DNA from: Chrysemys picta bellii
Lineage: Eukaryota
Assembly: GCF_011386835.1 (NCBI RefSeq)
Contig: NC_088792.1
Span: 289,540,001 to 289,604,000 of the forward strand
Direction: 5' to 3'
DNA: 64,000 nucleotides
Positions 6,111 to 50,877 of the stretch are shown here, piece by piece (position 1 is the stretch's first letter; the number at the start of each line of letters is the position of its first letter). Below the pieces are notes generated by a model. That model did no database searches. It was not told the DNA's origin and was given only the letters and a program-made list of their open reading frames with translations. Made by a program: the position numbers and the translations under genes.

Positions 6111-6139
6111 AGACTTGTTGCTGTTCCCCTGGACGGAGT

Positions 6140-6960: not shown

Positions 6961-7338
6961 AACCGGTTTCTACTGTGAGCAAAAAACCAGTCTGTGGTAA
7001 TTTGCAGAGAAATGCTAAATCTTTTTTTTTTTTAAATGAAGGTTTTAATACTTAAACTTTAGCGAGGAATAGAAAAAGATTTGATGTCTATTATAACAGG
7101 AGTTAAAAGTTTAATTGTTTTTTTACATGGTTTAAGCATGACTTGCTTTATTCTTTTAGTGGTAAAAATTATGTCTGAATTCTGTTTGCATATAAATAGT
7201 ATTAACCGCCTCCGAAGTCAAAGGGGGATACAAGAGATTTTTCAGCTGCTCTGTGTAAGGAATTCAGCACTAAGAGCGCTGCACAGCCACCACGAGCCGA
7301 AGCAGGGAGGAGAGACAGAAATTAAACTTGTTTAAAAT

Positions 7339-7344
7339 AATAAA
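7339..7344 (+). terminator. Candidate poly(A) signal for ZNFX1-like
   Basis: First AATAAA seen after the stop codon (ATTAAA also at 7321). Confidence 0.35.
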
Positions 7345-7502
7345 AAATGGAGCAGTGGCAGTAAATGGTAGGGTTAGGGCCTGCTTAGATATGGATAGCT
7401 TATAACTGTAGAGGTTTAATAGTTAAGACAGTTGTAGGTGGTTTCGGCTAGTGATAACAAGGTGGCCATCACAAGCAGTCACAGAGAAATCCAAAATGGA
7501 GG

Positions 7503-8648: not shown

Positions 8649-10795
8649 GGAGGTCTGGGAGTGATTCAGCCAACAGCAAGTAGGGAGGCTGAGGTGAAAT
8701 AAAGGTCACTCCAAAACCTGAAGGGAGAGGTCAATCAGGCAAGATGCAAGTCGTCAATCAGGTCAGCCAAATAAGGCACAAGTTTTCAATCAGGTCTAGC
8801 TCTGATTGACAGATAGAGGGCTTAAACATGATTGGTGGGAATGCTTAGGATTGTAAAAATAACCAATCCCAATAGGCCAAAATCTGTATAGAAGGCAGAG
8901 AGCGAACACTCGTGAGTCAGAGTGAGTGGAAGGTACTGGTGTGTATAAGCAGTAGGAGAATCAAGAATAAAAAGAAAAGAACTAAAATCACTTAAGCAGT
9001 AACAATGGAGCAGTAGCAACACCGACAGAGCAGAAGCAGCTCTCAGAGGGAAAAGAAGATAGCAGAGAAAGCAAATTAACTCTCCAGGGTAAGAATAATT
9101 AAGCTGTGTGAATGTAAGGGTCCGGGATAATAAAGCTGGATGTTTTTGTTCGTTATGATTTAGATGTTTAAGGATTTGCTGTCAGCATTGTGTGTGTGAC
9201 TAGTCATCACATATGGAATGTAACCACTTGAAGCAATTTAAAAACTGTATGATACTGCAATTGTGAATACTTAAAGTCAATTAGCACAGATCACATTATG
9301 CTTTGTTAAGAACATTTATGGATTCTTTATCTTCTTAATAAACATGTTGGATTAGGGAATATGTTAGTAAAGAATATTCTTGTTTTCAAAGAATACTGCC
9401 TGAATGTCAATCCTTTGAGCAGAAGACTGTATCCGTGTCCTTCCAAGGATCAACAGAGCTAGTCTGTCTTCCTGAGGGGAGGGGATTATAGATGCTAGCG
9501 TGATCATCTGGAACTTCAGCTTTTGAATAATGATGTTGAGTTGCTGAAGGTCCAGGGTGGGTCTCCACTCTTGGTCTTTTGTGGGGATTAGGAAATATGG
9601 GAAGTAGAACCCTCCCCTCTTCTGCGGTAAAGAGATGGGACGTGTTCTACTGCCCCTCAGTGTAAAAGGGATTCTGCCTACTATTGAAGAATCACCTCAT
9701 GAGAGGGGTCCCCAAAGGGGAAGAGGGGGAGGAAGGGGGTTTGTGAGCTGGCAAGGAAAGAAACTACGAAATATTCCTGGTGGATAATCTCCGGAACCTA
9801 AACTGTTCATTGTGATCTTGTTCCAGCTGTGGGTTAAAAGTGTAAGATGGCCCCCAAAATGACAGGGGACAGATGACTGGCAACAGCAGTGGTGTATGGA
9901 TCTCGACCAATGTGTCAAAAGTGGCTCTTGACTGGGGGTGGATAGTGAGGAGAGACTGGCAGTAGAGGGGGCCAAGAGTGAGGCCTCTGAATCCTCTGGC
10001 ATTTGTGCAGAGGCTGGGTTGTGCACTGGTGATAAGATGCACGAGGAGGGGGTGGCCTTGGTCTATTGGACTGCGTCTGGGGTTTCCTCCTAGGGGCTGG
10101 CGTATAAGTCCCCAGAGAATGCAGCATCAATCTTGAGTTTTTTAGTGAGTGCAGGGACTCAGCGGTTTTCTTGTTGAATGGATTCGACTCGTCAAATGGA
10201 AGGTCCTGGATGGCAGTTTGGACCTTGCTAGGGAACCCTGCCGGTTGTAGCCAGGAATCCCCCTCAGGACTAGACCAGAGGCTAAACTTCTGGAAGCCAG
10301 GTCCACCACATGCAGTGCAGCCCGGAGGGTTACGTTTGCCACTAGCCTCCCCTCCTCTAAGAGAGGCTGAAATGGACCCCCATCTTCTGTGGGAAGCTTG
10401 TCTGTGAAGTCCACAAGCCTGGAATAAGTATTAAAATCCTATTTCACTAGCACCACTTGTTAGTTAGCAACATTAAATTGCAGGCCTCTGGAGGAGACCA
10501 CCTTCCTCCCCACACAGTCCAGTCTTTTAGAGCCTTTATCTTCCAGGCTGGCCCCACGCTTTCATCGACCATCGGTACCACCGGCAACTTGGGGACAGGG
10601 TAGAATGAGAATTCAGCCCCTTTGGCAGGAACAAAACACTGTCTCTCAGCCCTTTTCGGTGTGGGGGAACAGGATGCTGGAGTGTGCCATCCCACTCTAG
10701 CCGGTTCTAGTATGGACTCAGTGATGGGTAGGGCTGCCTTACTCGGCTCCTGAGACTGCACAATGTCCAGGAGCTGGCATTGAGGGTCCTAGACC

Positions 10796-11790
10796 TCATC
10801 AGAACGGCCAGACTGGGTCAGACCAAAGGCCCATCAAGCCCAGTGTCCTGTCTTCCGCCAGTGGCCAATGCCAGGTGCCCCAGAGGGAATGAACAGAACA
10901 GGGAATCATCACGTGATCCATCCCGTCGCCCATTCCCAGCTCCTGGCAAACAGAGGCTAGGGACACCATCCCTGCCCAGCCTGGCTACTAGCTATTGATG
11001 GACCTATGCTCCATGCATTTATCTAGTTCTTTTTTGAACCCTGTTATATTCTTGGCCTTCACAACATCCTCTGGCAAAGAGTTCCACAAGCTGACTGTGC
11101 GTTGTGTGAAGAAATACTTCCTTTTGTTTTAAACCTGCTGCCTATTAATTTCATTTGGTGGCCCCTAGTTCTTGTGTTGGGAGGAGGAGTAAATAACACT
11201 TCCTTATTTACTTTCTCCACACCAGTCATGATTTTATAGACCTCTAGCATATCCCCCCTTAGTCATTTCTTTTCCAAGCTGAAAAGTCCCAATCTTATTA
11301 ATGTCTCCTCATAGGCAGCTGATCCATACCTCATCATTTTTGTTGCCCTTTTCTGACCCTTTTCCAATTCCAGTATATTCTGCAGTATTCGAGATGTGGG
11401 CATACCATGGATTTATAGAGACACAATATAATGTTTTCTCTTTTATCTATCCCTTTCTTAATGATACCCAACATTCTGTTCGCTTTTTTGACTGCCGCTG
11501 CACATTGAGTGGATGTTTTCAGAGAACTATCCACGATGACTCCAAGATCTCTCTCTTGAGTGGTAACAGCCAATTTAGACCCCATCGTTTTATATGTATA
11601 GTTGGGATCATGTTTTCCAATGTGCATTACTTTGCATTTATCAACACTGAATTTCATCTGCTATTTTGTTGCCCAGTCACCCAGTTTTGTGAGATCCCCT
11701 TGTAGCTCTTCGCAGTCTGCCTGGGACTTAACTATCTTGAGCAATTTTCGTATCATTTGCAAATTTCGCCATCTTACTGTTTACCCCCTT
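10796..11790 (-). mobile_element. CR1 LINE 3' fragment
   Basis: ORF2 C-terminal peptides ([26 protein letters not shown]) plus CR1 3' UTR; contains frameshifts. Confidence 0.92.
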
Positions 11791-13157
11791 TAATGGTATC
11801 TATGAATCACTGGCAACTTGTTGCAATAGCTCCTGGTACTGGCAGTGGCCATCTGGTAGAGAAGGCTGGTGCGTGCCTGTGTTCTCTTTGTGTGCTGAAC
11901 CTGGCCAGAGCTGGTACAGCACACAGACTTTTGCTCATAGCATAACTTTTGCTGAGTTTGGTTCAGGCCTCAGGCCTTGCCCCAGGCCTCGTGCTCTCTC
12001 CCCCTATTACAAAAACAGAGGAGCGACCACCTCATCCGGGGATGATGCAGAGGCACCCATCAGGGCCCGTGAATCCAGTTCCACCCCTCCTCCTCGAATA
12101 CCGACAGAACCGGCAGGCGAGGTGCAGTAGGACTCTTGAGCGGGGTTCAGATATCTGCCATAAGGAACTCACAGATCCCAATAATGCGAGAAAGAGGGAT
12201 GGATTGGTTGCAGGGGGACCCCAAAGAAATCTGGGCCAGCAGTCCCTGCGGGGAGGGGGTTCATATCCAGCAAGATGGTGAGGGTAACCCCTTGACTATC
12301 AGGGTTCAATTGCCTCCACAGAGCTACCAGTGCGGCCATCTCCTGCGAGTCATCTGAGTCCGAGACCTGCTCCATTGGTAGCAGTGGTGCTGTAGGTACC
12401 GGGACACTCCTGCCAGATTCCTGGAGGGGAGATGGCTCCTGGGACAATGGTGTAGACTCCTCCTCTGGAGTAAGAGCATCCCTCAGGAGGGCCGGGCTAG
12501 AAAAGTGGAGACTACGGATAAGGGAGGAATATATCCTCTGGTGTTATAAATGTCTCGGGACACCCTGGTGTTTGAGGTTCCCGTAGTTAAATCTGATGGA
12601 TCTGTTTATCTGCAGTGACCGGCTGGTCTTTAGATAGACGAAGCGATACAGACAACTGGTCTGGACCTGCACTTGTAGACGGAACATCTATCCTTGTGCT
12701 TCAGTACCGAGGTGACCAACAGACCCAGCGGATCCTTCTTTCTGTGTCTTGCACTCTGATCCAGGGGTCTTCAATGGAGTCAGTTCCTTAGGTTCCATAT
12801 GTGACGTCCCCCCCAAGCTGGACAGATTCAGGGAGGAAGTGCGTTTTTCATGGACAGTCCTCAATGATGATCTGTCCTTACACCAGGAGAGTGCTCTCTA
12901 CCATCAAGGGCAGCCCTGAAAGAAGAGATCTTAGGCTTAGATGTTGAGGGCTCTGCTCCAAGGCACTTACTTGGAGGGGCACTGTTGATCAGTTGAGGCT
13001 GATTACAGGGGGTCTCCCTGGCTGAAATCGGAGAGGGCTCTCATAGCCTTTTCCATCACATGCCTCCACAGGCGAAGCTCCCGGGCTTCTTGAGTTCTGG
13101 GTGGGAAGGAGCAACAGATAGTGCACTTCACAGAGACTAACACGGCTGCTACTCTGA

Positions 13158-13453
13158 GGGCTGGTCCCCACTTAGTCCGGACTTCGGACTAAGGTACGCA
13201 AATTCAGCTACGTTAATAACGTAGCTGAATTCGAAGTACCTTAGTCCGGACTTACCGCGGTCCAGACGCGGCCGGAAGTCTCCCCCCGTCGACGCCGCGT
13301 ACTCCTCTCGGCGAGCTGGAGTACCGGCGCCGACTGTGAGCACTTCCGGGATCGATCCGGGATCGATTTATCGCGTCTTAACCAGACGCGATAAACCGAT
13401 CCCAGAACATCGATGGCGTGCCGCCGGACCAGCCGGTAAGTGAAGACTAGGCC
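13158..13453. mobile_element. PIF/Harbinger-type MITE
   Basis: Imperfect TIRs gggctggtccccactta / ggcctagtcttcactta; TGA and TAA flanks; internal palindrome gctacgttaataacgtagc. Confidence 0.85.
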
Positions 13454-13891
13454 TAAAACTTCACAGAGATATGCGCCTCACCCAGACAATACAGGCAACA
13501 CTGATGTTCATCACTGACGGAGAAGGATTGAGGGACTCTGGGCATAGTCCTGGTGCTGCAGAGGCGTTTCCCAACCAGGGAGAAAGAAATACTCGGAACT
13601 ATACTATAAACTTTAACTGCTAACTACTAATCTCAGAATACAACAATTTACAAATGCTTTCTTTATAGGTTATGCACCAAAGTGGAGGGCACAGTTCTGA
13701 CTTGGGCCAAGCAGTGGTAAAAAGGAACTGGAGAGATATCAACCCACACTGTCTCTTATACCCTTGGTCAGGAGCATGAGGAGAACTACCGCACATGTGC
13801 GGGCCAACGGACACTGCTCTGAAGAATTTCTGGATAGGGTGCATGGTGCGCATTCACACTCACATTTAGAATACACGTAGAGACCATCACT

Positions 13892-14951
13892 CATAAGAAC
13901 ATAAGAAAGGCCGTACCGGGTCAGACCAAAGGTCCATCTAGCCCAGTATCCTGTCTACCGACAGTGGTCAATGCCAGGTGCCCCAGAGGGAGTGAACCTA
14001 ACAGGCAATGATCAAGTGATCTCTCTCCTGCCATCCATCTCCACCCTCTGACAAACAGAGGCTAGGGACACCATTCCTTACCCATCCTGGCTAATAGCCA
14101 TTAATGGACTTAACCACCATGAATTTATCCAGTTCTCTTTTAAACTCTGTTATAGTCCTAGCCTTCACAACCTCCTCAGGTAAGGAGTTCCACAAGTTGA
14201 CTGTGCGCTGTGTGAAGAACAACTTCCTTTTATTTGTTTTAAACCTGCTGCCTATTAATTTCATTTGATGACCCCTAGTTCTTGTATTATGGGAATAAGT
14301 AAATAACTTTTCCTTATCCACTTTCTCCACATCACTCATGATTTTATATACCTCTATCATATCCCCCCTTAGTCTCCTCTTTTCCAAGCTGATGAGTCCT
14401 AGCCTCTTTAATCTCTCCTCATATGGGACCCGTTCCAAACCCTTAATCATTTTAGTTGCCCTTTTCTGAACCTTTTCTAGTGCCAGTATATCTTTTTTGA
14501 GATGAGGAGACCACATCTGTACGCAGTATTTGAGAGGAGGGCGTACCATCGATTTATATAAGGGCAATAATATATTCTCCGTCTTATTCTCTATCCCCTT
14601 TTTAATGATTCCTAACATCCTGTTTGCTTTTTTGACCGCCTCTGCACACTGCGTGGACGTTTTCAGAGAACTATCCACGATGACTCCAAGATCTTTTTCC
14701 TGACTTGTTGTAGCTAAATTAGCCCCCATCATATTGTATGTATAGTTGGGGTTATTTTTTCCAATGTGCATTACTTTACATTTATCAACATTAAATTTCA
14801 TTTGCCATTTTGTTGCCCAATCACTTAGTTTTGTGAGATCTTTTTGAAGTTCTTCACAGTCTGCTTTGGACTTAACTATCTTTAGCAGTTTAGTACCATC
14901 TGCAAACTTTGCCACCTCACTGTTTACCCCTTTCTCCAGATCATTTATGAA
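13892..14951 (-). mobile_element. CR1 LINE 3' fragment
   Basis: ORF 14091-14915 contains KFADGTKL...[14 protein letters not shown]...[13 protein letters not shown]; cataagaacataagaa 3' terminal repeat. Confidence 0.95.
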
Positions 14952-14969
14952 GAATGTACACCTGATGGG

Positions 14970-15710
14970 TCTTCAATATGGAAGTTGAAGTCACTATGCA
15001 TGAGTGTGAAAGACTGGGAAGAGAAGAGAGAGCCAAGAGTTGAAATCAAAGAGGAAGGCTGAGGGGGAGGAATTGGATGGACAGTAGATGACAGCAACAT
15101 GGAGGGTGAGCAGAGAGTCAGGTGCAGTGCTGTTCAAAAAGAGGAGAACGCAGGAACGGAGAGGGCGGAGGTTGGAGGGACTTGAAGCAGCAGGAACAGG
15201 ATAGAAAAAGCCCATCACCCCCACCCCGGTCTGTTCCAGGCAGGAATGAGAGAAAAGAAGAGACCTCCTCAGAGGGCAGCAGCAGAGGTCATGACAGACA
15301 AAGGGATCTAGGTCAGAAAGCGAAGAGCTGTAGGGAGCAAGATACAAAGAGGTCATGGATGACAAATCTTTTCAGAGAAGGAGTAGGTGTTTCAGAGACA
15401 GTGGGGAAGGAGGGGGGGGAAAGAGAATTTGTGTAAGGTTGGAAATGGTGGCACAAGAGCAGCGGAAGTGGTCATGGGGAGATGGATATGGGAAGTGGAA
15501 AGGGGGTGAATGTAGGACTTGGATCTGTGCTGGTGGAAGGAAAGGGGAGATTAGTATGGAGAGGGGAAGAGGAGCAGGTAGGGACAGTGGGAACTGTAGA
15601 AGGGTCAGGGTACCAAGGATGGGAAAATGGAGCCAGTGGGGGGGGAAGGAGGATGGATGAAGAAGAAATGCGGTGATAGCCACTCTCAGTATGTAACATG
15701 TCCCCGCCTC
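14970..15710 (-). mobile_element. Old L2-type LINE endonuclease fragment
   Basis: Peptide LHVAVIYCPSNSSPSAFLFDFNSWLS resembles the L2 APE VAVIYRPP region. Confidence 0.55.
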
Positions 15711-15716
15711 CTCTAT

Positions 15717-15766
<50 letters not shown>
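15717..15766. repeat. (CA)n microsatellite
   Basis: Uninterrupted CA run read directly. Confidence 0.97.
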
Positions 15767-15770
<4 letters not shown>

Positions 15771-16315
15771 GTACAATCACCAATACTTGTATAAGTTTTT
15801 TTTGGAAGAATAGCAAGTATTTTTATTTTATAAACACAAAAAGGCACAAATACAATGCATGATTCAAGCAATGCTAGAAAACACCATATTGGTATAAGGC
15901 AAAAACAGTTTGCCAGCTGAAGTGATGCACCAAGAGACACTTTCAGTCAGGCTGGGTTCCTAACATCCCAGCAGTTTATCTGCTTTACCTCAAAGAGTCC
16001 TGCATTCAGTTAAAACAAAACAAAAGAACAACCCTGCTCAACAGCATAAAAATTCTTACAGCACTTGCAAATTTAGCAGCAGGCAGCATCGCAGGGAAAG
16101 GATGGAAACACATTAAAAAGGAGAAACAAGACAGGGAAGGGTGGGGGCAATACTATTAAACAGATCGTTGTGCTCCATAGCTCTGTTCAGCAAAATGAAT
16201 GAAACTAATCAGAACTGGGAATATTTAGAGAAAGCAAAACTAAACAGTTAATCCATGAAGATTTAACTGTACTGCACAGATTCCTCTTCACCAAGGATTC
16301 TCGTCTTCATTTAGG

Positions 16316-16386
16316 ACCTGCTCCAAAGACCACCGAAGTCAGTGCAAGTCTCTACGTGATTTCAGTGGGCTTTGGATCAAGCCCCA
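16316..16386. repeat. Short palindromic interspersed repeat (second copy at about 56910-56982)
   Basis: ggacctgctccaaag...ctttggatcaagccc hairpin; same pattern as gggcctgatccag...tttggatcaggttc. Confidence 0.55.
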
Positions 16387-16800
16387 CTTGCATCCACTGC
16401 CACTCTAACACTGCAGGGCTTTATGATACAGAAAAGTATAATCCAACTCCAGGCTCTCTCAGAAACCATGTCCTTATGGGACACAAAACTCAGCCATTTC
16501 TCACACTTGACACACAGTGTAACCCCAAGAACTCACTCTCACCTGATGGAAGTTTGGGTCACACCTCACCAGAAGGCCAGGGAGAGGTTTTAATGTAGAT
16601 TTGTTTACTTAGGGGGTTACACTAAACATATTATCTTTTCAGATTAGAACTTTCCTACTTCCTTTCCACTTCTGCTGAACTTCGAGCACAACCTGTCTGT
16701 ATTTGAAAATCCCCACCACAGGCAGGATAAGCTCATTCTCCAGCACCATCCTGGGACATCATCCATCCCTCAATTTACACAGAACAACAAGAAGTTGTTC

Positions 16801-16806
16801 TTTATT
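16801..16806 (-). terminator. Candidate poly(A) signal of NUGGC-like gene
   Basis: TTTATT on + (AATAAA on -), about 580 nt beyond the proposed stop. Confidence 0.45.
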
Positions 16807-17378
16807 ATTGCAGAAGTTTTCTGTTGATCAAATCACAATCTGTTTTCCTCTCCAAAAATCAGTGGGTCGATGATCTGTTGCTTTGGATTAATATGTAGGC
16901 TACAGTGTCTTAGCATTTGACTCTATGCATTTTGGATGAGTTACTGTTACTCTAAGTTTTTCTTTACCAACATGGCTTTCACTGGCAAAGAGTTGTTGGC
17001 TACACTCTAGAGTCAAGTGTCTTAGCAAAGGGGGAGTCCCATTTATATCATCTCTGCATGCTGCTGACTCACTTAATTTCTCTTTCAAGAAACAGTCAAC
17101 TATTGTCCAAATGGAGACTTCAGCTTTGCTGCTGTATGCAAACTCTTCCATTCTGAAAAGAGGCACTGATGCAGCAGGGTACTTCAGAGACAGTGCCCAG
17201 AATTCACTCAGTAAGTCGTATTAAATTATCCGTGTAAGATTACTTGACGATCAGTTTCAGAATAATTTTTCAACGGGAAGGAGTCTATTTCTACAGCCTT
17301 TTGGTACCGATGATATATGTTCATATATTGTGTGTTGTGTGTATAGAAGTCAGGTAACAATCTTTGTATTATAACAAA

Positions 17379-17521
17379 CTAGTGTGGGCTCCATGAATCT
17401 TTTGCAGTGTGCGTGTTTCCATTGGTCTCCATTTTATCCCCATCAGAACTGTCGTCTTCCTGAGCATTTAGAGTTCGCCACTTTCCCCAAACACCCTCTT
17501 TGGCTCGGACATGAAGGGTAC
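17379..17521 (-). CDS. NUGGC-like: NUGGC-like exon 22 of window, probable last coding exon ((G)TLHVRAKEGVWGKW...DSWSPH*)
   Basis: Pyrimidine-rich acceptor tattttgttctcctcttgcatacaataaAG; phase 1 matches the preceding exon; ends in TAG. No homology support, so less certain. Confidence 0.6.
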
Positions 17522-26316: not shown

Positions 26317-26552
26317 CTCGGTAGATGGAACCCAGCAGGTTCCACTTCTGGGCTTTGTTCTATGGTTTTGCCTTTGTGCTTCTTCTCCAACTGTGACTGG
26401 ATCTCTCCTCCTCCTCTCTTTCTGCCATATGGATAACACTTCACGCCAGGGAGCAGGGGCTGCTGTGCGATGGTGAAGACGGTTGGTTGATCTGATGGCA
26501 AACTGGAAGGTGGGACCTCAAGAGTCTTTTCTTCGTCATCATATTTTAAGTC
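26317..26552 (-). CDS. NUGGC-like: NUGGC-like exon 19 (DLKYDDEEKTLEVPP...YGRKRGGGEIQSQLEKKHKGK...GFHLP)
   Basis: ttttttccctcttccctAG acceptor, GTaact donor; 236 nt, phase 0 to 2, open. Confidence 0.8.
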
Positions 26553-27683
26553 CTAGGGAAGAGGGAAAAAAATTAAATACCTGCTAAACTGAACATGCTA
26601 AAATGCAGCCTGCAGCAACCTTAACTTCTGCATTCTTAACCATGTATCTCAAATGCTTTCTTAACCCATTTTGTAGGGAATTTCCTTGGGTTCTTTCTTT
26701 GGTTTAAAAAAGAATATGGATTCCCCCTCCCCCCCCAGAATTCAGTGAAAACACAGCAAGAGTTCCAGGAGCACTGAACAAGATGAACAATAGCTGAGCC
26801 CGTAACAGCTTACAATTCAAAAGTATGCAGCTTATGCCACCTGCATACGCATGCGCAACACGGCCGCCTTTTGCCGTACACTTTATAAAAACCAATGAGA
26901 TGATGAATGCAGAAGTCTACTCAAAAACAGCACATATATTTCAAAGGCTCATAAGTCAGTTAAATTACAAAAGCTTTTGCTTAAAGACTCTCCAAAAATA
27001 ATTCACCTTCAGATAGAGATTAACAACCCTAGATAATTTCAGCTCAAGAGGTCAGAATTCCTGAAAGATGAGTGACTAAACACCATGAAATAATATTTTA
27101 TCTCCATCATCACAAGAGACAAATCAAATGAGAATTGCTGCAGGTGGGCTATCATCCAACATCTGGCAGGGGCAGAGATCCATGATCAAACCATGGATGT
27201 TAGAGTGGTTACATTCAAGAGTCTCCCAGAAGCGAAGCCTCGCAGCAGCACAGGGCAGAAAGCTTGTTGTGGTGACTTGCTAAACTAAAGGTACAAATAC
27301 AGTATGGGAGTTTGTAGTTAAGTCATGCGTGTCTGTCTGATTAGGAAGTAGGTCTGATAGATAAATACAAAAAACAACCACCCAAAAAAACAAAAATCAT
27401 TGCAAGACAGTGAGAATTCACTATGTCACTAGAACTAGATTCTACTTGAGGTTGAAGAATCTGTTCAAGAGCAGATGATCTATTAACATGTAGGGCAAGG
27501 CCCCAGTCTTTCAGGACAACTCTTCAGGACTGGCTGGCACTCATCTGTGGAGCTCAAGTATCTGATAATACCAGCTTTCCCAGCAAACAGCCTCCAATTC
27601 ATTCTCTCTTTGGAAACAAGCTTGTTTTCTGATAGTCACCCTGAAATTCCCACCTCTAGACTGCAGAACTCATGATGGCTCAC

Positions 27684-27853
27684 TTTGACAGTGTAATACA
27701 CCCCCAGCGATTCCAGTTTCTCTCTTCCCTGCTGCAGATTTAGTTCCCGGAACCAAGGTATGCCCCCATGTCTTGCCGAAATGAATTCTATCAAGCTATG
27801 GAAAGATGATGGGTCCTGGAGCTTGTCCAGGATAATGAGAGCCTCCTGGTTAC
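27684..27853 (-). CDS. NUGGC-like: NUGGC-like exon 18 (NQEALIILDKLQDPSSFHSLIEFISARHGGIPWFRELNLQQGREKLESLGVYYTVK)
   Basis: ctgtctttatacctAG acceptor, GTgagc donor; 170 nt, phase 1 to 0. Confidence 0.85.
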
Positions 27854-28273
27854 CTAGGTATAAAGACAGTACAATTAAACTACATTACATAGCGCAACAT
27901 AAACTAATCTCAGAAGCGTGAAGGAGCTTTTTATATCACTCCCCCCACTTCCTACTGGCTGTTGTTTCTAGGAATCCAATATGTTCGGCGGAAGTCTCAG
28001 AATGTTTATATGGTTTATGTAGCACAGCAACACCAGGTCTATGGAATAACTCAAATTAGCATAGATACTGCTCCATACAGAAGACACAGCAGGAGAACTT
28101 CAAAGAAACTCCTGCTGGCTCCACACATGATTATGATAATGACAGATGGAAAAAGCTCATGTGGGTGTATGTGTGGTTTCCCCCTCCACCAGTTAGGACA
28201 GGGAAGACAAGGCACACCTACTATTGCAAAACACATTAGCCCATTGTAGTGGTTCAGACTTTAAATTACAGTA

Positions 28274-29395
28274 CAGTAACTCCTCATTTAACGTTGTCCC
28301 GGTTAACGTTGTTACGTTGCTGATCAATTAGGGAACAAGCTCATTTAAAGTTGCACAATGCTCCCTTATAGTCGTTTGGCAGCAGCCTGCTTTGTCCACT
28401 GCTTGCAGGATTCTCTGGAAGAGGAGCCCCTCCTTGTAGGGATTAGAACCAGCACCCTCCACCCGCGTGCCCACCCCCCCCCCATCACCTCCCCTAAATT
28501 CCCCGTAAGATATGTGGCTCGGCAGCTGCCCAGCAGCCGTTCAGCTGTCCCACCCCCATTGCCGTGCTGCTCCTGCCCTGCCCTCTGCCTTGGAGCTGCT
28601 CCCAGGAGCTTCGACCTTGCTGGAGGAGGCGGGGGAGAGGGGTGCTGGTATCAGGATGTCCCCCTGCTCCTGCCCCGTCCCCCACGCCGTACCACAAAGT
28701 GGAGGAGGAGGGACAGGGCTAGGGGACAGAATGGAGGGAGCTTGCTGGAAGCTGTTGCTTCCTGTCTGATCTGCTTAAAAGGGGTCTGCTTAAGTACTTG
28801 AGGTGGGGTCAGCGTACTCAGAGGGGCAATGCACATCTCTCTCTCTCATGCACGTACGCCCCCAGCACTTTGGAAAGTCAGCACCTGTGCATGTGCTGTC
28901 TGGAGGAGGGAGTGGTGCGCTCCAGCTGGATAGCATGGGCTCATCATCATGTTCAGTATTTGCAGGAAAGAGTTTGCAGCTACTGCCCTGCATCTATTGT
29001 GTTTCCTCCCTTCTGCCTCAGTCCATGCTTCCCTGTAGAGTGTGAGGCTACATTAACAACAGCATATTAACTCTTGAGAGCTCAGCAGAGTCCTAGTTAA
29101 TCATTTGGCAGTAAGGCATTCCCTGGAAATAACCCACCCTCTGACTCCACCACCGCAACCCAGCTTCACATTCATTGTGGTGTACAGTATTAAACCGTTT
29201 ATTTAAAATTGTTTAAAACATATACTGTATATGTATATAATGTCTTGTCTGGTGAAAAAAAGTTTCCCTGGAACCTAACCCCCCCCCCCCCATTTACATT
29301 AATTCTTACGGGGAAATTGGGATTCGCTTAGCATCGTTTCGCATAAAGTCGCATTTTTCAGGAACAGATCTACAACGTTAAGTGAGGAGTTACTG
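28274..29395. mobile_element. Tc1/mariner-pogo (Tigger-like) non-autonomous element
   Basis: TIRs cagtaactcctcatttaacgttg / caacgttaagtgaggagttactg; TA TSD. Confidence 0.88.
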
Positions 29396-29535
29396 TATAT
29401 GGTACATGTGTCTGGTGGAGATATGGAAAACAAAAGCCTTGTACAAACAAAAAGCCCTTCAATAGTTCACAGGTTTATCTAGGTTGTTTTTCAAGACATC
29501 ACCACCACCCGGGAGACATTCCCATTTCCACTCAC

Positions 29536-29676
29536 TTGGGTTGGATGCCTGGACTCCCAATCTGGAATAAATGTTCTTGGCAAACTCAGGAGAGAGATGA
29601 AGGATCAAATAATATAGGTGGAAGCAACATTCACAAAGATACACGCTGCTGAACGGAAGAGTCATGGTGGTATTAT
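29536..29676 (-). CDS. NUGGC-like: NUGGC-like exon 17 (NTTMTLPFSSVYLCECCFHLYYLILHLSPEFAKNIYSRLGVQASNP)
   Basis: catctttcttcctccaaAG acceptor, GTgagt donor; 141 nt, phase 1 to 1. Confidence 0.85.
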
Positions 29677-30515
29677 CTTTGGAGGAAGAAAGATGAGCAT
29701 TTAAAAGTATGCTCACATTTATGCTCCTATGACAGCAAAACCATATTCAGTGTTTCAAAATCTCTGAACATAATATGGTGCCACAGCCAAAGGATGGTGC
29801 TGTCGCTGTTCTATTAGTTTAAATTTATATTATGTGCTTTGTCCAGGTGGAAAGAAAATATCCTCATATCAAAAACCTACTTAAGCCTCCCACATAAGAG
29901 ATTAATTATCTGTTCACTGAATATTCTAAAATGAAAACTAATTTTACAGTGTACAAAGAAAAAACCCTCAATGGAGAATGGCAGTGGATATTAAACACTG
30001 TAATGACTAACTCCTCGAAGCCAGTGACCAGGAGCTTTCTAGGAGCATCAATGCAATCTGCCGGGCTGGGAACTCCTGGTTACTAAGATTTACCTACGGG
30101 GTATCCCCGGGGTGCTCCAAGCCCTAAGATGGTGTGTAGGAAAAAGAGTGGCATGAAGTTCTAGTCTCTCTCTCTCTTCTGAGAGTTCAAATGGAGAAGT
30201 AACAGGAATGTATCCAGCTGTGCCAGAAAGGTGTGAATGGATTCGGTGAGACCAACAATTCTAAAAGTCAATCATTCTGATCAATTCATACTGCCCAGGG
30301 AATGTCCCCATACCAGAGGGACCTTGATTCTGTGTGCTGAGTCCCAATGCTTCATAGCCAAGGCAGAAGCACTGGTCAAAAGTTTCTTTCTTGGGAGTTT
30401 TAAATACCAACTTCAAGGGATTGAAGAAAATCCTTCTATTCTGCAGTTTATAAATGGGGGGTGGGGTGGAAAAAGTAGGGCGTGCACAAAGATAAAAATT
30501 ATGTAGGTTACTCAC

Positions 30516-30549
30516 CTGTCATAGTGATGGTGACTTCTTGCACAGATAT
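30516..30549 (-). CDS. NUGGC-like: NUGGC-like exon 16, 34-nt micro-exon (ISVQEVTITMT)
   Basis: ctgtctcttgtatttttaAG acceptor, GTgagt donor; phase 0 to 1, required for frame continuity. Confidence 0.82.
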
Positions 30550-31289
30550 CTTAAAAATACAAGAGACAGATTTGTTAGGTGATAACTCACTGATTTCCAA
30601 ATAGAACAGTGAGAAAAGACATTTAAAAACAAGGTTGTGGCTGTTTTTCATTTTCCAGTATTGACTCCTGAATGGAACTCTACGATATGTTCACAGAGAA
30701 GCCCTGAAATGGATGACAGGCTTTGCTTTCTCCTGAAGATCACTTTTTGAATTTATTTTGCTAAAAGCTTCTATGAGTTAATAAAATACACTGCAATTGA
30801 GAAATGGATAATACAATTTGCAGTTAAAATATTTCATTTAGAAACCGTTAAGGATGTAAATATATGATACAATTTTATTAGATTTAAAAAAACCCTCATG
30901 TTTCAATTTCCAGATTTTCATAGTTAAGATCCCCCAAACAACTTTATCACTAACTCCATAATTCCACCAACCATTTATATACCCATGGTTTACTCAGCAA
31001 TATAGATACAGGAGATGCAAATGGTAACCATTCATTGTACGGTTTCTGTGTACTTTCAGGCCAGAATTTCATGATGAAGACCTTGAACTCTATCTGGAAG
31101 TGCATAAGGAAGGTAATTCAGAGTAGAACGTTTACTACATACTTTGGAGGGTAGGTGGAGTAGACCGCCCTGTCTAGTTGGCAGTAGCTGTTGATCCGGG
31201 AGTGTATTAAGGCTCATTGGTAGAAATAAAGAGAATTATAAAACACCTACATGAATGAGGACAGGCCAAGCCAGCACACCTTCTGTAAA

Positions 31290-31420
31290 AGAAGCTTACA
31301 CCTCTCTATTAAAATTCTTTATGCATGTCAACAAAATAGTGGATAAAGGGGAATCTGGCAACATGTCGTCTCTGGACACTGCAAATACTTTTGGAAAGTC
31401 TCTCATCAGAGGCTATTCTG
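31290..31420 (+). mobile_element. Ancient CR1 RT remnant
   Basis: HVNKIVDKGESGNMSSLDTANTFGK resembles CR1 VDKGxxVDxxYLDFxKAFD. Confidence 0.55.
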
Positions 31421-31475
31421 CAATTGTGTATGACATTGCACCTTCCTCTGAAGCACTTGGTAGTGGTCAGTGTCA

Positions 31476-31760
31476 GGGCTGGTCTACACTAAAGCTGTAA
31501 GCCAATCTAGGTTATGTTACTTCAGTTACGTAACTGAAGTTGATGTAACTTAGGTCGACTTACAGAGGTGTCTACACCGCGCTGTGTCGATGGGAGACAC
31601 TCTCCCGCCGACTTACCTTCTGCCTCTCGGGGAGATGGAGTACAGACTCGATGGGAGAGTGCTCTGCCATCGACTTAGCAGGTCTTCACCAGACCTGCTA
31701 AATTGACACCACTGTATCGATAGTAGCAGTGCAGATTTAGCCATAAGTATAGACAAGACC
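31476..31760. mobile_element. Harbinger-type MITE
   Basis: gggctggtctacacta...tatagacaagacc; TCA flanks. Confidence 0.82.
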
Positions 31761-31871
31761 TCAGAGGCAGAAGACTGTACTAAAGGGACCTCTAGTTTGG
31801 TCTGGAATGGCAATTAATAGGTCTCTAAAATGTTCAAGCCAAGTGTTGCAACTGGCAAACTTTATATAGTT

Positions 31872-31960
31872 GCATCCAAAGAAGTGGGCTGTAGCCCACG
31901 AAAGCTTATGCTCAAATAAATTTGTTAGTCTCTAAGGTGCCACAAGTACTCCTGTTCTTT
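31872..31960. mobile_element. Penelope-type terminal fragment (common reptile repeat)
   Basis: gcatccaaagaagtgggctgtagcccacgaaagcttatgctcaaataaatttgttagtctctaaggtgccacaagtactcc recognised from memory; class assignment is inference. Confidence 0.6.
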
Positions 31961-32747
31961 TTATAAAAAGCGTTGAAGGAAGCCACAGCGATTCCAAGTC
32001 TGCGGTAGATAAAACCCAATCTAAAAGCCAGCCAGCAGCATTTCAGAAGTACTCAAAGGCAATAACTTTCACTGAGGACCAATGAATGAATAAAATGGGG
32101 GGGGGGGGGGTAGGGGCGGGCGGGCTGGGTTCCTAGGGTCTTAAAAAAAAAAAGTTAGACTTCAAGAAGATAAGTTATTTTCCAACTTCTCACATCTCCA
32201 ATTAATCTCAAATATAAGGGAAAGAAACCCTGTGTCAGGATGCTCCACACAAGAAGTTTCTGCTAGAAAGGATTTATTTTGAACAAGTTAGGGCTCGGCT
32301 AAGGACCAAAATCAAACTTCCCTGGGAAATCTAGTTAAAACCTGAACTACTGAAAGGAGAAACAGCTTTACAATGTGTTCAAACCTGCCCAATGGTAGAG
32401 AGTGGTCACAGAAAGAATGAACATATCCAGTGAGGATAAATTCCAAGAAGAGAAAAAGGGAGAATCTCTCTCATCTAATATTGGAGCAGAAAAAGGAAAT
32501 CCTTCCTGTTAGCATGGAATCCACGGGTATACTATATAATGCCAGTGAATCTTTTGAGACAGAGAAATAGGATGTACCATATATTCTGAGTGTATAGCAC
32601 TTAGAACAACAAGTCTCAAAGTTTCACATCACTTTGGCAGAAGTATTTCTGTCGGTTTCTCTTGTGCCTTCTCTCTTGGACACCCAAATCTGCTCCTACT
32701 TAACATCCCTCCCAACCCAAGGGAAGAGGTGCTTTTAAATTCAGTAC

Positions 32748-32977
32748 CTGAATGGGATTAATGTGAGAAAGTGACATGGTCCCAATGCGGATGATATTGC
32801 ACTTTCCCAAGAAGTTTGGGGGATCCAAGCCTTCCTGCAGCTCCCTCTTTAACGGCAGCTCCTTCCCAGGAGAAGCAGGTACAGAACAACTTTCTGTCTT
32901 GCTGAGGTTGGGAAGAACATAATCTATACGAGATATTTTACAAATCTTGCTGACTTTGGCACAGATGTTCACTAAAT
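32748..32977 (-). CDS. NUGGC-like: NUGGC-like exon 15 (LVNICAKVSKICKISRIDYVLP...GKCNIIRIGTMSLSHINPIQ)
   Basis: Acceptor ...tttaatgttttgtccAG, donor GTactg; 230 nt, phase 1 to 0. Confidence 0.87.
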
Positions 32978-33706
32978 CTGGACAAAACATTAAAGGAACA
33001 AATGTTATTCCCTCCGCTGACCAGCAGTCCTAACGATTCAAAGCTGCACCTGTTATAAACACAAGACACATTGAAGCCAGGCTTTCCACAGCAAGAAATG
33101 GGTAGCATGAACATGAACTGTACCGCTCCCAATAAGCTATGTAACTGGAACACTGCCAGGTAACAGATTTCATGCAATGCTTTCCAGTAGATACACTGCA
33201 CCTTGTATCTGTGTGAAGGCACACCTGGTGCGGCTGGCAGCCCATTCCCAGGAGAGTAGAGGTGCCATTGGTAATGGCTGCATAATTAAAAGGGCCAACC
33301 TTGTGCATCTTCCCCTTTCAGTTGGTGTATACACAATTATGCTTGTGTGTGCAAAGTCTGCCTCTGAGGACACACCACTAGAAGGAGCAGGCACACAGCC
33401 AAATCTGACAAAGGCAAAACTATTTTTTTAAGGACGGCAAAGTACAGTTCAGCTCTCATTTTAGTTCGAGAGCATTACAGTTCAAAACAAAGACAGCACA
33501 AATTCTATCAGCACACTCTGAAGTAGGAGATTACTGAATTAGCTTCAGCAATGCCTACTTGTTACAGCTCACATATGTAACCAGCCTCTAACTGCTCCAC
33601 AAGAAGGTGCGAGTGCTGGGACGTTGTGTCTCTGTTTGCAGCATTTACTCTAGACATTGTTTACAGCAACGAGAGGAAGCCAACGTGCAAGCAAGAACCT
33701 CTTTAC

Positions 33707-35941: not shown

Positions 35942-37310
35942 CTACGGGAGAGGGATGGTATTTAAATGTCAGCACATAATCTCACAAGTGTTGGTGCAGC
36001 CTTGTCCATGTGCTACTCAACCAATGGCCAGAATGGTAATCTGTCAGGAGGCCTGGTGCCACACAATGCCTACTAAAATGGAAACTGCAATCTAATAGAG
36101 GTGTGGCCTACAGAGACAGCAGGTCCCAACCAGAGACGACCCAGGCCTGTTGATAGTGGAGGGGGTCAGAATCCTGGAACAGCTCAAGTCATGTCCCCCA
36201 CCCCAGCAGTGCCTCCCTCCCAGGAAGCAGTGCCCCTCCCTGCAGATCCCAGCTGTTCCTCCTGCCTCTCCCTGCCTGCTCAGCTGTCCTGCAGGGAGAA
36301 GGCCCGACCATACCATGCGATCAAGCAATCTGGAGGGGGCACATGACCCTACATGTCCCCCCCCCCACACACGTATTGCCTCTGGTCCCAACATATGCTG
36401 CTTCATTTTGATCCAAGTGGCCATACTAAATTGCATGTTGGGATGGCACTGAAGGCACTAGACTGCCTTATTATTCATGAAGCCCCAAGCTGTCATGAGG
36501 AGAGAAGTTCTCCCTCTCGGGAACAAGGGAAGCAAAGCTTGCATGAGAAACAGGGCTGTACACTGAAGAGAAGGTGGGACTCAATCTTCATTGTAGAACT
36601 CGGATGTATTTAGCTTGTAGACCACACAGACTGAACTACACAGCCAGGGGGAGCTTTGTGGTCATGAGCCTGAGCACATCCCTAGTGCTTTTACAGCAAA
36701 CCATAGCTGCATGTATACAGACGACATAACTGTCACTGTGGATTAAACTCCACATGTTCAGCACCAAACATACAAACCTCTGCTACCTGCATTACTGACC
36801 CTCTTTAGCTGTGATGACGCAGCACATTGCATACTCTGCAGCGAGTCAGTAGGGGGAGTCATGAGCACAGAAAAAAAAGCCAGGGTTTTACATGTTGATC
36901 CCTCAAGTTCTTTTCACCAGGGAATGTGAGCAGCTCCAGACCTGACAGCAACATCAGCAGAATATGGTAGTGGAACGGTTGCTAGGCTGTCTGCTGGCAC
37001 CCGTAACACATTCCAAACCCCATACGGTCTCCACAATCCCTAGACTTCCAATTTCAAAACCGTGGGCATTTGACCTACCACTCTTCTGCCTTCATCATCA
37101 CATGCTTCCAATTTTAAATTAGCCCAGACCTATGCAATCATAAACACAACAGCAAAGTATTACTTCATTCATGCACCATAGGAAGGAATCACTGCAGAGT
37201 CTCTGAAGTCCCTTATAAAGTTCCCAGAGACTCATTTTGGTGTGGCCCCTAACATCCAGAGCATACAATTTGCTGCTTCATCACAGCTAAAGAGGGTTAG
37301 TAATGCAGGT

Positions 37311-37919
37311 GGCAAACAGAGGCAAGGGATACCATCCCTGCCCATCCTAGGTAATAGCCATTGATGGACCTATCCTCCATGAATGTATCTAGTTCTTTTT
37401 TGAACCCTCTTATAGTCTTGGCCTTCACAACATCCTCTGGCAAGGAGTTCCACGGGTTGACTGTATGTTGTGCGAAGAAATATTTCCTTTTGTTTGTTTT
37501 AAACCTGCTGCCTATTAATTTCATTTGGTGACCTTTAGTTCTTGTGTTATGAGTAAACAAGACTTCCTTATTTACTTTCTCCACACCAGTCATGATTTTA
37601 TAGACCTCTATCTTATATGCCCTTAGTTGTCTCTGTTCCAAGCTGAAAAATCCCAGTCTTATTAATCTCTCCTCAGACGGAAGCTGTTCCAGACCCCTAA
37701 TCATTTTTGTTGCCCTTTTCTGAACCTTTTCTAATTCCAATATATCTTTTTTGAGATAGGACGACCACGTGTGCACACAGTATTCAAGATGTGGGCGTAC
37801 CATAAATTTATAGAGAGGCAATATGATATTTTCTGTCTTATTATCAATTCCTTTCTTAATGATTCCCAACACTGTTTGCTTTTTTTGACTGCCGCTGCAC
37901 ACTGAGTGGATGTTTTCAG
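37311..37919 (-). mobile_element. CR1 LINE 3' fragment
   Basis: ORF 37297-37944 carries CR1 ORF2 C-terminal peptides. Confidence 0.92.
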
Positions 37920-38352
37920 TGTCAGATGGAGGCATGCACCACACCTGGGTGCTACTACATTGCTGTGACAGAGTCCAGCTCTAGCTCTGTGCAGTTCTGC
38001 AGCACTGCTGTGGAATTTCATTCTCCGCTCCTTCTCTCCCTTTTGAAGATGCTAAGTGATCTACAAATACACAACATTATTATTTGGCTGCTCAAGAATA
38101 AGAATTTAAAGTGATCTCTTTGCACTAGGGCCTTTGAAATTTAAGAAATAAAAGTGGGAAAAGTGGATTCAACAGGAGGAGGAGTGTAGTGACTCTACCA
38201 CCATACAGATTTTCATACTACCAGCTTGGGAACCATTCTTTCCAGTACTAACTGGCAGAATTCACCATTGCACAGATGGTTAGTATCACTGCTACAATTT
38301 GGCTCTCAATGTACAGGAAGCCAGACTTAGCCCAGCTGTAGGATTTTCCTAC

Positions 38353-47636: not shown

Positions 47637-48778
47637 AAGAATCATTGAATCACAGGACGGGAAGGGACCTCGAGAGGTTGTCTAGTCCAGTCCCCTGCAC
47701 TCATGACAGGGGTTTGTCCAACCTGCTCTTAAACATCTCCAAGGATGGAGATTCGACAACCTCCCTAGGCAATTTATTCCAGTGCTTCACCACCCTGACA
47801 GTTAGGAATTTTTTCCTAACGTTCAACCTAAACCTCCTTTGCTTCAATTTAAGCCCATTGCTTCTTGTCCTAACCTCAGAAGTTAACAAGAACAATTTGT
47901 CCCCTCTAAGTCTTCTCTTTTCCAGCCTAAACGAACCCAATTTTTTCAATCTTTCCTCATAGGTCATGTCTTCTAGACCTTTAATCATTTTTGTTGCTCT
48001 TCTCTGGACTCTCTCCAATTTGTCCACATCTTTCCTGAGATGTGGCACCCAGAACTGGACACAATACTCTAGTTGAGGCCTAATCAGCACAGAGTAGAGG
48101 GGAATGGAAGAATTACTTCTCGTGTCTTGCTTACAACACTCCTGCTGATACATCCCAGGATGATGATTGCTTTTTTCGCTACAGTGTTACACTGTTGACT
48201 CATATTTAGCTTGTGATTCACTGTGACCCCCCAGATCACTTTCTTCAGTACTCCTTCCTAGGCAGTCATTTCCCATTTTGTATGCATGCTACTGATTGTT
48301 CCTTCCTAAGTGGAGTACTTTGCATTTGTCCTTATTGAATTTCATCCTATTTACTTCAGACCATTTCTCCAGTTTGTCCAGATCATTTTGAATGTTAATC
48401 CTACCCTCGAAAGCACTTGCAACACTTCCCAGCTTGGTATCGTCCGCAAACTTTATAAGTGTACTCTCTGTGCCATTAGCTAAATCATCAAGGAACATTT
48501 TTTAACAGAACTGGACCCAGAACTCATCCTTATGGGACCCTACCTGATATGCCCTTCCAGCTTGATTGTGAACCACTGATAACTACTCTCTGGGAACAGT
48601 TTTCCAACCAGTTATGCACTCATCTTATAGTAGCTCCATCTAGATTGTATTTCCCTAGTTTGTTTATGAGAAGGTCGTACAAGACAGTATCAAAAGCCTC
48701 ACTAAAGTCAAGATACACCACATCTACCGCTTTCCTCCATCCACAAGGCTTGTTACCCTGTCAAAGAAAGCTATTAGT
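47637..48778 (-). mobile_element. CR1 LINE 3' fragment (second subfamily)
   Basis: [10 protein letters not shown] (48289-48498) and [30 protein letters not shown] (47701-48153). Confidence 0.92.
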
Positions 48779-50877
48779 TGAAGAGGAAGTGTAGCATCAT
48801 TAGAGTTGATGCATTTTAAAGAATCCTTATTGAGGTTGCAGGAACAAACCATCCCGATGTGTAGAAAGAATAGTAAATATGGCAGGCGACCAGCTTGGCT
48901 AAACAGTGAAATCCTTGCTGATCTTAAACGCAAAAAAGAAGCTTACAAGAAATGGAAGATTGGACAAATGACCAGGGAGGAGTATAAAAATATTGCTCAG
49001 GCGTGCAGGAGTGAAATCAGGAAGGCCAAATCACACTTGGAGTTGCAGTTAGCAAGAGATGTTAAGAGTAACAAGAAGGGTTTCTTCAGGTATGTTAGCA
49101 ACAAGAAGAAAATCAAGGAAAGTGTGGGCCCCTTACTGAATGAGGGAGGCAACCTAGTGACTGAGGATGTGGAAAAAGCTAATGTACTCAATGATTTTTT
49201 TGCCTCTGTCTTCACGAACAAGGTCAGCTCCCAGACTGCTGCACTGGGCAGTACAGCATGGGGAGAAGGTGACCAACGCCTCTGTGGAGAAAGAAGTGGT
49301 TCGGGACTATTTAGAAAAACTGGACGTGCACAAGTCCATGGGGCCGGATGCGCTGCATCCGAGGGTGCTAAAGGAGTTGGCGGGTGAGATTGCAGAGCCA
49401 TTAGCCATTATTTTTGAAAACTCATGGCGATCGGGGGAGGTCCCAGATGACTGGAAAAAGGCTAATGTAGTGCCCATCTTTAAAAAAGGGAAGAAGGAGG
49501 ATCCGGGGAACTACAGGCCAGTCAGCCTCACCTCAGTCCCTGGAAAAATCATGGAGCAGGTCCTCAAGGAATCAATTATGAAACATTTAGAGGAGAGGAA
49601 AGTGATCAGGAACAGTCAGCATAGATTCACGAAGGGGAAGTCGTGCCTGACTAACCTAATTGCCTTCTATGATGAGATAACTGGCTCTGTGGATGAGGGG
49701 AAAGCAGTGGATGTGTTATTCCTTGACTTTAGCAAAGCTTTTGATACGGTCTCCCACAGTATTCTTGCTGCCAAGTTAAAGAAGTATGGGCTGGATGAAT
49801 GGACTGTAAGGTGGATAGAAAGCTGGCTAGATCGTCGGGCTCAACGGGTAGTGATCAATGGCTCCATGTCTAGTTGGCAGCCGGTTTCAAGCGGAGTGCC
49901 CCAAGGGTCGGTCCTGGGGCCGGTTTTGTTTAATATCTTTATTAATGATCTGGAGGATGGTGTGGACTGCACTCTCAGCAAGTTTGCAGATGACACTAAA
50001 CTAGGAGGCGTGGTAGATACACTAGAGGGTAGGGATCGGATACAGAGGGACCTAGACAAATTAGAAGATTGGGACGAAAAAAACCTGATGAGGTTCAACA
50101 AGGACAAGTGCAGAGTCCTGCACTTAGGACGGAAGAATCCCATGCACTGCTACAGACTAGGGACCGAATGGCTAGGTAGCAGTTCTGCAGAAAAGGACCT
50201 AGGGGTCACAGTGGACGAGAAGCTGGATATGAGTCAACAGTGTGCTCTTGTTGCCAAGAAGGCTAACGGCATTTTGGGCTGTATCAGTAGGGGCATTGCC
50301 AGCAGATCGAGGGACGTGATCGTTCCCCTTTATTCGACATTGGTGAGGCCTCATCTGGAATACTGTGTCCAGTTTTGGGCCCCACACTACAAGAAGGATG
50401 TGGAAAAATTGGAAAGAGTCCAGCGGAGGGCAACAAAAATGATTAGGGGTCTGGAGCACATGACTTATGAGGAGAGGCTGAGGGAACTGGGATTGTTTAG
50501 TCTCCAGAAGAGAAGAATGAGGGGGGGATTTGATAGCAGCCTTCAACTACCTGAAGGGGGGTTCCAAAGAGGATGGAGTTCGGCTGTTCTCAGTGGTGGC
50601 AGACGACAGAACAAGGAGCAATGGTCTCAAGTTGCAGTGGGGGAGGTCCAGGTTGGATATCAGGAAAAACTATTTCACTAGGAGGGTGGTGAAACACTGG
50701 AATGCGTTACCTAGGGAGGTGGTGGAGTCTCCTTCCTTGGAGGTTTTTAAGGCCCGGCTTGACAAAGCCCTGGCTGGGATGATTTAGCTGGGAATTGGTC
50801 CTGCTTTGAGCAGGGGGTTGGACTAGATGACCTCTTGAGGTCCCTTCCAACTCTGATATTCTATGATTCTATGATTC
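48779..50877 (+). mobile_element. Young 5'-truncated CR1 LINE, RT largely intact
   Basis: ORFs 48806-49387 and 49167-50681 ([41 protein letters not shown]) with two frameshifts; (ATTCTATG)n 3' tail. Confidence 0.96.

Follow-up and report, generated by a model that had tools for sequence, protein, structure and literature searches.

A predicted PH-like domain behind the GTPase and stalk of a giant SLIP-GC/NUGGC-family protein in Chrysemys picta bellii

SLIP-GC (NUGGC) is a poorly understood nuclear dynamin-like GTPase tied to genome stability in B cells. In this study, we analyzed a 64,000-nucleotide stretch of the Chrysemys picta bellii genome (NCBI RefSeq assembly GCF_011386835.1, contig NC_088792.1, forward-strand positions 289,540,001 to 289,604,000; hereafter the window, numbered from its first letter), which carries part of a giant gene of this family on its minus strand. 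Four exons of this gene, numbered 15 to 18 and lying between 32977 and 27684, probably encode a putative protein-binding domain of ~140 residues with a fold like that of pleckstrin homology (PH) domains, placed behind the GTPase and the DUF7605 stalk. The splicing of these exons, their place in a single gene and open reading frame (ORF), their conservation from lungfish to turtle and the predicted fold of their product are the established parts of this account.

Exon structure, splicing and gene context

Splicing was assessed in contigs of four public runs (X1, X5, X8 and X9, carrying three organism labels; 24 runs were found) over positions 27600-33000. Read on the minus strand, all four exons are bounded by AG acceptors and GT donors. 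Exon 15 (32977-32748) was delimited from the sequence and by tblastn with the alligator and sea-turtle orthologs, and a spliced contig piece covers 32748-32982 in all four runs. An acceptor at 32901 was also considered and was ruled out, as the ortholog alignment places it at 32977; position 32810 marks only the start of the peptide quoted in a preliminary description of this locus. The last codon of exon 15 is complete (..HINPIQ), so that its junction with exon 16 falls in full-codon phase. Exon 16 (30549-30516, 34 nt), read from the sequence and aligned to the orthologs, encodes ISVQEVTITMT plus 1 nt (33+1 nt), and its junction with exon 17 splits the codon g|at for D. Exon 17 (29676-29536; NTTMTLPFSSVYLCECCFHLYYLILHLSPEFAKNIYSRLGVQASNP), covered by contig pieces over 29534-29676, comprises 2+138+1 nt (NTTMTLPFSSVYLCECCFH...SNP), and its junction with exon 18 splits the codon a|gt for S. 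Exon 18 (27853-27684; NQEALIILDKLQDPSSFHSLIEFISARHGGIPWFRELNLQQGREKLESLGVYYTVK) comprises 2+168 nt (NQEALIILDKL...GREKLESLGVYYTVK) and is covered by contig pieces starting at 27683.

The junctions 30549→32748 and 29676→30516, on either side of exon 16, are present exactly in contigs of X1, X5 and X8, and the junction 27851(+2)→29534(+2), between exons 18 and 17, in contigs of all four runs; the skipped intervals all end in CT..AC, corresponding to GT..AG on the minus strand. The spliced contigs measure 3,561 nt (X1), 5,484 nt (X5), 527 nt (X8) and 1,426 nt (X9), and that of X5 extends 4.6 kb past exon 15 toward the 5' end of the mRNA, a span that would suffice for the whole GTPase region if colinear. 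These runs had been labelled 'RNA?' by guess, and the intron-free junctions, together with an intron depth of almost nil, argue that they are RNA. With canonical sites, fitting phases and three exact junctions in public contigs, exons 15-18 are spliced together as the preliminary description had proposed, and the peptide quoted there is their conceptual product.

Only the donor at 27684 is used for exon 18 in the contigs examined. Some sea-turtle RefSeq isoforms (P0021, P0023 and P0024) continue for 10 codons past this donor (VSHHEFCMLE; 27654-27684). The sole match to a word search with exon 18 was a stretch of 68 residues in genomic DNA from a related turtle, which reads through the donor and is uninformative on splicing. 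Identity to the contig of a related turtle is 94% in exons and 92% in introns, a gap too small to show constraint.

These exons belong to one minus-strand gene that runs from beyond position 64000 down to a stop codon at 17379-17381. By tblastn, the window from 62013 to 17382 is colinear with Chelonia residues 2322-3435 in 21 exons, mostly at 90-100% identity; the order of these exons agrees with the numbering 15-18, and the part of the gene in the window corresponds to the C-terminal third of sea-turtle proteins of ~3,430 residues. The GTPase-domain exons lie at ~62013-61783, 61644-61423 and 59685-59503 (minus strand), where stop-free segments are colinear with Dynamin_N of the alligator (P0004) and sea-turtle (P0021) proteins. 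They carry the G3 (LVDLPGIRD) and G4 (TKTD) motifs, and the P-loop exon falls past the window end. Eleven stalk exons on the same strand, between 33708 and 55877, are colinear by tblastn with P0021 residues 2527-3055 at 71-100% identity, and at 69-100% across four turtle orthologs; the portion at ~40177-35805 corresponds to DUF7605 of the orthologs (P0021 2810-2984). Beyond exon 18, three minus-strand tail exons (26552-26319, 24131-23970 and 17552-17382), identified by tblastn and the end of the ORF, precede the stop codon. The tail they encode is of low complexity and probably disordered. The first of them (26319-26552) contains the motif YPYGRKRGGG, whose form (Y/F)P(Y/F)GRKRG is conserved from lungfish through alligator to turtle in an otherwise poorly conserved tail. 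This motif could serve as a nuclear localisation signal or as a short linear motif for binding.

Scanned singly against Pfam, one GTPase exon of the window gave a weak Dynamin_N match, and exons 15, 17 and 18 gave none. For orthologs that are 90-98% identical to most window exons and 73-85% identical to a few, the Pfam E-values are 1e-17 for Dynamin_N and 5e-15 for DUF7605. A dynamin-type G domain followed by a DUF7605 stalk in the same polypeptide places the protein in the SLIP-GC/NUGGC family. Ortholog colinearity, these Pfam matches and the single-ORF transcript of a relative described below bear out the claim that exons 15-18 share a gene and ORF with a dynamin-like GTPase of this type. 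It had further been stated that no SUMO-protease domain follows the module; Pfam indeed finds no Peptidase_C48 match in the full-length orthologs P0003, P0004, P0009, P0010 and P0021, and the low complexity of the three tail exons is consistent with this.

Taxonomic range and predicted fold of the module

To survey relatives, exons were searched singly, and orthologous proteins were used in place of the spliced turtle product. A phmmer search with exon 18 against 1.84 billion representative proteins yielded 12 matches. In five very long proteins the match falls close to the C-terminal end, namely in those of ostrich (3,979 aa), alligator (2,005 aa), Rhineura (3,564 aa) and lungfish (1,936 aa) and in a Logan protein (4,963 aa). 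In every long protein tested, Pfam places Dynamin_N and DUF7605 upstream of the exon 18 match. The Logan protein is encoded by a 15,670-nt contig as one uninterrupted ORF with an FHA start, Dynamin_N, DUF7605 and the module; this contig is a transcript and shows the entire architecture within a single mRNA of a relative. Its core is 52-53% identical to the sauropsid proteins and 48% identical to that of lungfish, and it may, as a guess, come from an amphibian. A word search with the alligator module region added proteins of ~3,430 aa from Chelonia, Caretta and Dermochelys. Over the collected proteins, a profile of the module matches five turtle genera (Chelonia, Caretta, Dermochelys, Carettochelys and Pelodiscus) as well as alligator, ostrich, rhea, Rhineura, gecko, cobra, sea krait, lungfish and the Logan transcript. 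The module stands behind the GTPase core in every gene model that contains the core, several models being C-terminal fragments, and gene models agree on the fusion in >12 species.

The remaining phmmer matches (P0002, P0006-P0008 and P0011-P0013) were rejected as non-homologous: each is a repeat protein matched over several short segments, the only feature in common is a short HGG..W.R.EL.L.QG-like motif, and none is matched in a whole-module blastp. Six of them (P0002, P0007, P0008 and P0011-P0013), apparently bacterial, carry units with ..HGG(F/I)(G/A)W(I/L)R.EL(G/D)L(E/D)QG.., which resemble SARHGGIPWFRELNLQQG of exon 18 over ~20 residues. This likeness probably reflects a convergent helix-turn-helix hairpin, with E-values inflated by the summation of repeats.

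The module is missing from the short SLIP-GC-like proteins found in coelacanth (876 aa) and lungfish (734 aa), which stop 18-40 residues past the stalk, and in homologs from molluscs and fungi the C-terminus is unrelated. The phmmer search with exon 18, from which remote similarity would escape, returned no protein of a mammal or neognath bird; within that limit, the result agrees with the earlier statement that mammalian NUGGC lacks such an extension. Among the 120 matches listed for the core, no mammalian sequence appears. In lungfish, the short and giant forms lie on one chromosome-scale contig, and this co-occurrence suggests paralogy, rather than one-to-one orthology with mammalian NUGGC.

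Structure models of two orthologs, that of Caretta (~93% identical to the module of the window; 8-sequence alignment; pLDDT 76.9, pTM 0.74) and that of lungfish (32% identical; 14-sequence alignment; pLDDT 74.1, pTM 0.72), agree in the order of their elements: ~7 strands and the helix that follows beta6 precede an additional strand (VLIILD), after which come a long helix and then a short strand and helix. The domain is predicted to have seven to eight strands, with an inserted helix behind beta6; its last strand leads into a capping helix and a short extension made of a strand and a helix. In terms of exons, the first half of exon 15 encodes a conserved, helix-like segment (DLVNICAKVSKICKISRIDYVLP) together with a linker, and its remainder from ~32810 (LGKCNIIRIGTMSLSHINPIQ) supplies the first strands; exon 16 corresponds to one beta strand, exon 17 to strands beta5 and beta6 with an invariant C-E-x-C...L-x-L-H plus the inserted helix, and exon 18 to the last strand, the capping helix and the extension.

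The models contain the seven-stranded antiparallel beta sandwich and C-terminal amphipathic helix that define the PH-like superfamily. Foldseek against the Protein Data Bank (PDB) returned PH-like proteins only (CARMIL, SPT16, Pob3, SIN1, kindlin, GLUE, SSRP1 and PTB domains), with weak E-values of 3e-3 and above and a probability of ~1, and the best structural neighbours are non-lipid PH-like modules. The PH-type fold anticipated in the preliminary description is therefore predicted for the module. At the level of sequence, a module profile gave only noise against PDB sequences and Pfam (e.g., ribosomal protein S15 at E 0.1) and no matching Pfam family. Across 14 orthologs, C57, E58, L66, L68, H69, L110, W123, G132, L136, L139 and V141 are invariant, and C60 is nearly so; such residues would suit the core and a surface patch of a module that binds protein. 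A zinc site formed by C14, C57, C60 and H69 was considered, but C14 is replaced by H or S in squamates.

Neighbouring gene and interspersed repeats

A ZNFX1-like helicase gene (2340-5795, plus strand) lies past the 3' end of the GTPase gene and is transcribed toward it. Its alligator counterpart, a gene with an AAA_12 helicase domain (locus L003, 87547-90862, minus strand), is likewise convergent and lies 3 kb downstream, which indicates that the gene pair is conserved between turtle and crocodilian. The interval 5796-17378, between the ZNFX1-like gene and the stop codon of the GTPase gene, contains no coding exon of the latter.

Several repeats were found in and around the gene. The intron between exons 16 and 15 contains a ~90-nt copy (31871-31962; ..GGGCTGTAGCCCACGAAAGCTTATGCTCAAATAAATTTGTTAGTCTCTAAGGTGCCACAAGTACTCCTGTTCTTTTT) of a very abundant interspersed repeat, with a summed contig depth of 50,000-170,000 in all four runs and many loose ends, as would fit a SINE-like element present in many transcripts; an Rfam scan of 27000-33500, which includes this copy, gave no match. 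In the intron between exons 18 and 17, the segment 28143-29409 is repeat-rich and partly GC-rich, with a contig depth of hundreds to thousands and many odd joints, and probably represents dispersed repeats rather than exons. ORF fragments of CR1-type LINE reverse transcriptase lie in introns at 37297-37944 (minus), 47704-48186 (minus) and 49167-50681 (plus), and another lies downstream of the stop codon at 14094-14972 (minus). A (CA)n/(TG)n microsatellite (15716-15776; translation CVCVCV) also lies downstream of the stop codon, in presumed 3' untranslated region or intergenic sequence.

Possible roles and comparison with known systems

Full-length relatives comprise, in order, an FHA start, a disordered region of >2,000 residues, the GTPase, the stalk, the PH-like domain and a disordered tail with a KR-rich motif. 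Within such a protein, the domain would bind protein or peptide, not lipid. It may bring the GTPase to a partner, which would most likely be nuclear or associated with chromatin, or it may dock back onto the stalk and thereby control assembly, like the PH domain of classical dynamin. We infer a targeting or autoregulatory role for the turtle protein from the N-terminal FHA domain of its relatives, the conserved (Y/F)P(Y/F)GRKRG of the tail, and the reported nuclear localisation and genome-stability role of SLIP-GC (Richter 2009 and 2012, as cited in PMC12107551).

That exons 15-18 might instead come from a separate downstream gene, or be non-coding chance ORFs joined to the GTPase by annotation, is extremely improbable. 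Its sole point is that the chain of junctions from GTPase to module is not covered end to end in this species, and it is opposed by the exact junctions in 3.6- and 5.5-kb spliced contigs that reach kilobases past exons 15-18, the uninterrupted ORF in the transcript contig of a relative, the concordance of independent gene models and the conservation of the protein from lungfish to turtle. The dynamin-superfamily context and the PH-like fold would both suit a membrane-targeting, phosphoinositide-binding PH domain as in classical dynamin. This interpretation has little probability, however. The signature of such domains, K-Xn-(K/R)-X-R in the beta1-beta2 loop with a positive face, is not found; no conserved basic signature occurs in beta1-beta2 across orthologs (GKCNIIRIGT, TCDIVIEDD, AASMDVRVG), and the net charge of the core ranges from -4 to +4 and is neutral to acidic in most species, both of which make dynamin-type lipid binding unlikely. 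The non-lipid character of the closest structural neighbours and the nuclear location of the related SLIP-GC also speak against it.

A more specific proposal, compatible with a protein-binding PH-like domain behind the GTPase and stalk, is that the module is truly homologous to the region that precedes the protease domain of SENP6 and SENP7 and belongs to a mobile, unnamed PH-like family common to SUMO-chain proteases and the GTPase. We regard this as possible but doubtful. The preliminary description proposed a similarity in pattern to the region before Peptidase_C48 of these Ulp2-type SUMO proteases, in a C...RIGT start, CE(W/C)C, a hydrophobic strand and helix, an IIL strand and a final helix. 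The fold it predicted was found in the models, and the Carettochelys ortholog has CEWC exactly where that description placed CEWC in SENP6/7. SENP7 may have a similar strand and helix pattern before its protease. Against the proposal, phmmer with exon 18 returned nothing beyond proteins linked to the GTPase and a few repeat proteins of bacteria, and no SENP, a single-exon query being too insensitive for remote homology; the module profile matched nothing in Pfam or the PDB; no SENP or Ulp chain occurs among the structural neighbours, the SENP region probably being absent from the PDB; and none of the papers searched ascribes a PH-like domain to SENP6, SENP7 or Ulp2. The two contexts also differ, in that Peptidase_C48 follows in SENP6/SENP7 and not here. 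A chromatin or SUMO-pathway function of the module, as suggested earlier, is conjectural. Still less likely is a broader scenario, in which the module would be the founding member of an unnamed PH-like family limited to SENP6/7 and, in non-mammalian sarcopterygians, the giant FHA-dynamin-like GTPase; this GTPase would be recruited to the chromatin- or poly-SUMO-linked partner of SENP6/7 and, paired with the ZNFX1-like helicase gene, could form a nuclear genome-defence or immune module lost in mammals.

The preliminary description also called the architecture possibly undescribed. This holds for the literature searched, in which no paper was found on the fusion, the giant FHA-GTPase or DUF7605. 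It does not hold for databases, since RefSeq and GenBank already list gene models with the fusion for several species, under the names 'uncharacterized protein', 'nuclear GTPase SLIP-GC' (Rhineura) and, wrongly, 'transcription factor 19' (alligator). The last label, attached to the 2,005-residue P0004 (KYO40922.1), evidently derives from the N-terminal FHA domain and is misleading for a dynamin-like GTPase. Reptiles, ratite birds, lungfish and probably amphibians carry this far larger relative of SLIP-GC, in which an FHA domain, the GTPase and stalk, and a conserved PH-like domain are combined. The PH-like domain is unnamed in any domain database and defines a new family for annotation. The two ends of the protein also offer handles on function, the first being a phospho-peptide reader and the second a PH-like module that probably binds protein; if the link with SENP6/7 were true, a common binding partner would be indicated. 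The gain lies mainly in annotation and hypothesis building, and current views are not overturned.

Among known systems, NUGGC/SLIP-GC (nuclear GTPase, germinal center associated) has the same GTPase and stalk core, Dynamin_N and DUF7605 being present in all full-length orthologs of the turtle protein, and SLIP-GC-like proteins from coelacanth, frogs, molluscs and fungi match the core of the giant protein at 30-50% identity. In contrast to NUGGC/SLIP-GC, the giant protein is three to six times longer; relative to the short SLIP-GC-like proteins, the giant relatives add the FHA domain and huge disordered region at the N-terminus and the PH-like module and tail at the C-terminus. In fold, the module resembles PH-like modules of histone chaperones and nuclear adaptors, namely those of FACT (Pob3, Spt16M, and the N-terminal and middle domains of SSRP1), the Spt16M-like domain of SYCP2, Rtt106, TFIIH p62 and pICln. 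However, identity to these modules is only 3-14%, with no sequence-level match, the module differs by an inserted helix and by a strand and helix added at its C-terminal end, and a common fold does not show a common function.

Classical dynamin is ordered as GTPase, middle domain, PH domain, GTPase effector domain (GED) and proline-rich domain (PRD). It resembles the giant protein in combining a dynamin-superfamily GTPase and stalk with a PH-type domain and a disordered C-terminal tail. In dynamin, the PH domain lies inside the stalk, between the middle domain and GED, and the PRD ends the protein, whereas here the PH-like domain follows a complete DUF7605 stalk, no GED or Dynamin_M match is found with Pfam, and the basic lipid-binding loop is absent; the giant protein is thus not a classical dynamin. 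The dynamin PH domain is not within the top 50 structural neighbours of the module. As classical dynamin shows, the combination of a PH-type domain with a dynamin-superfamily GTPase is known; the giant protein differs in where the domain stands, in the type to which its PH-like domain belongs and in its architecture as a whole.

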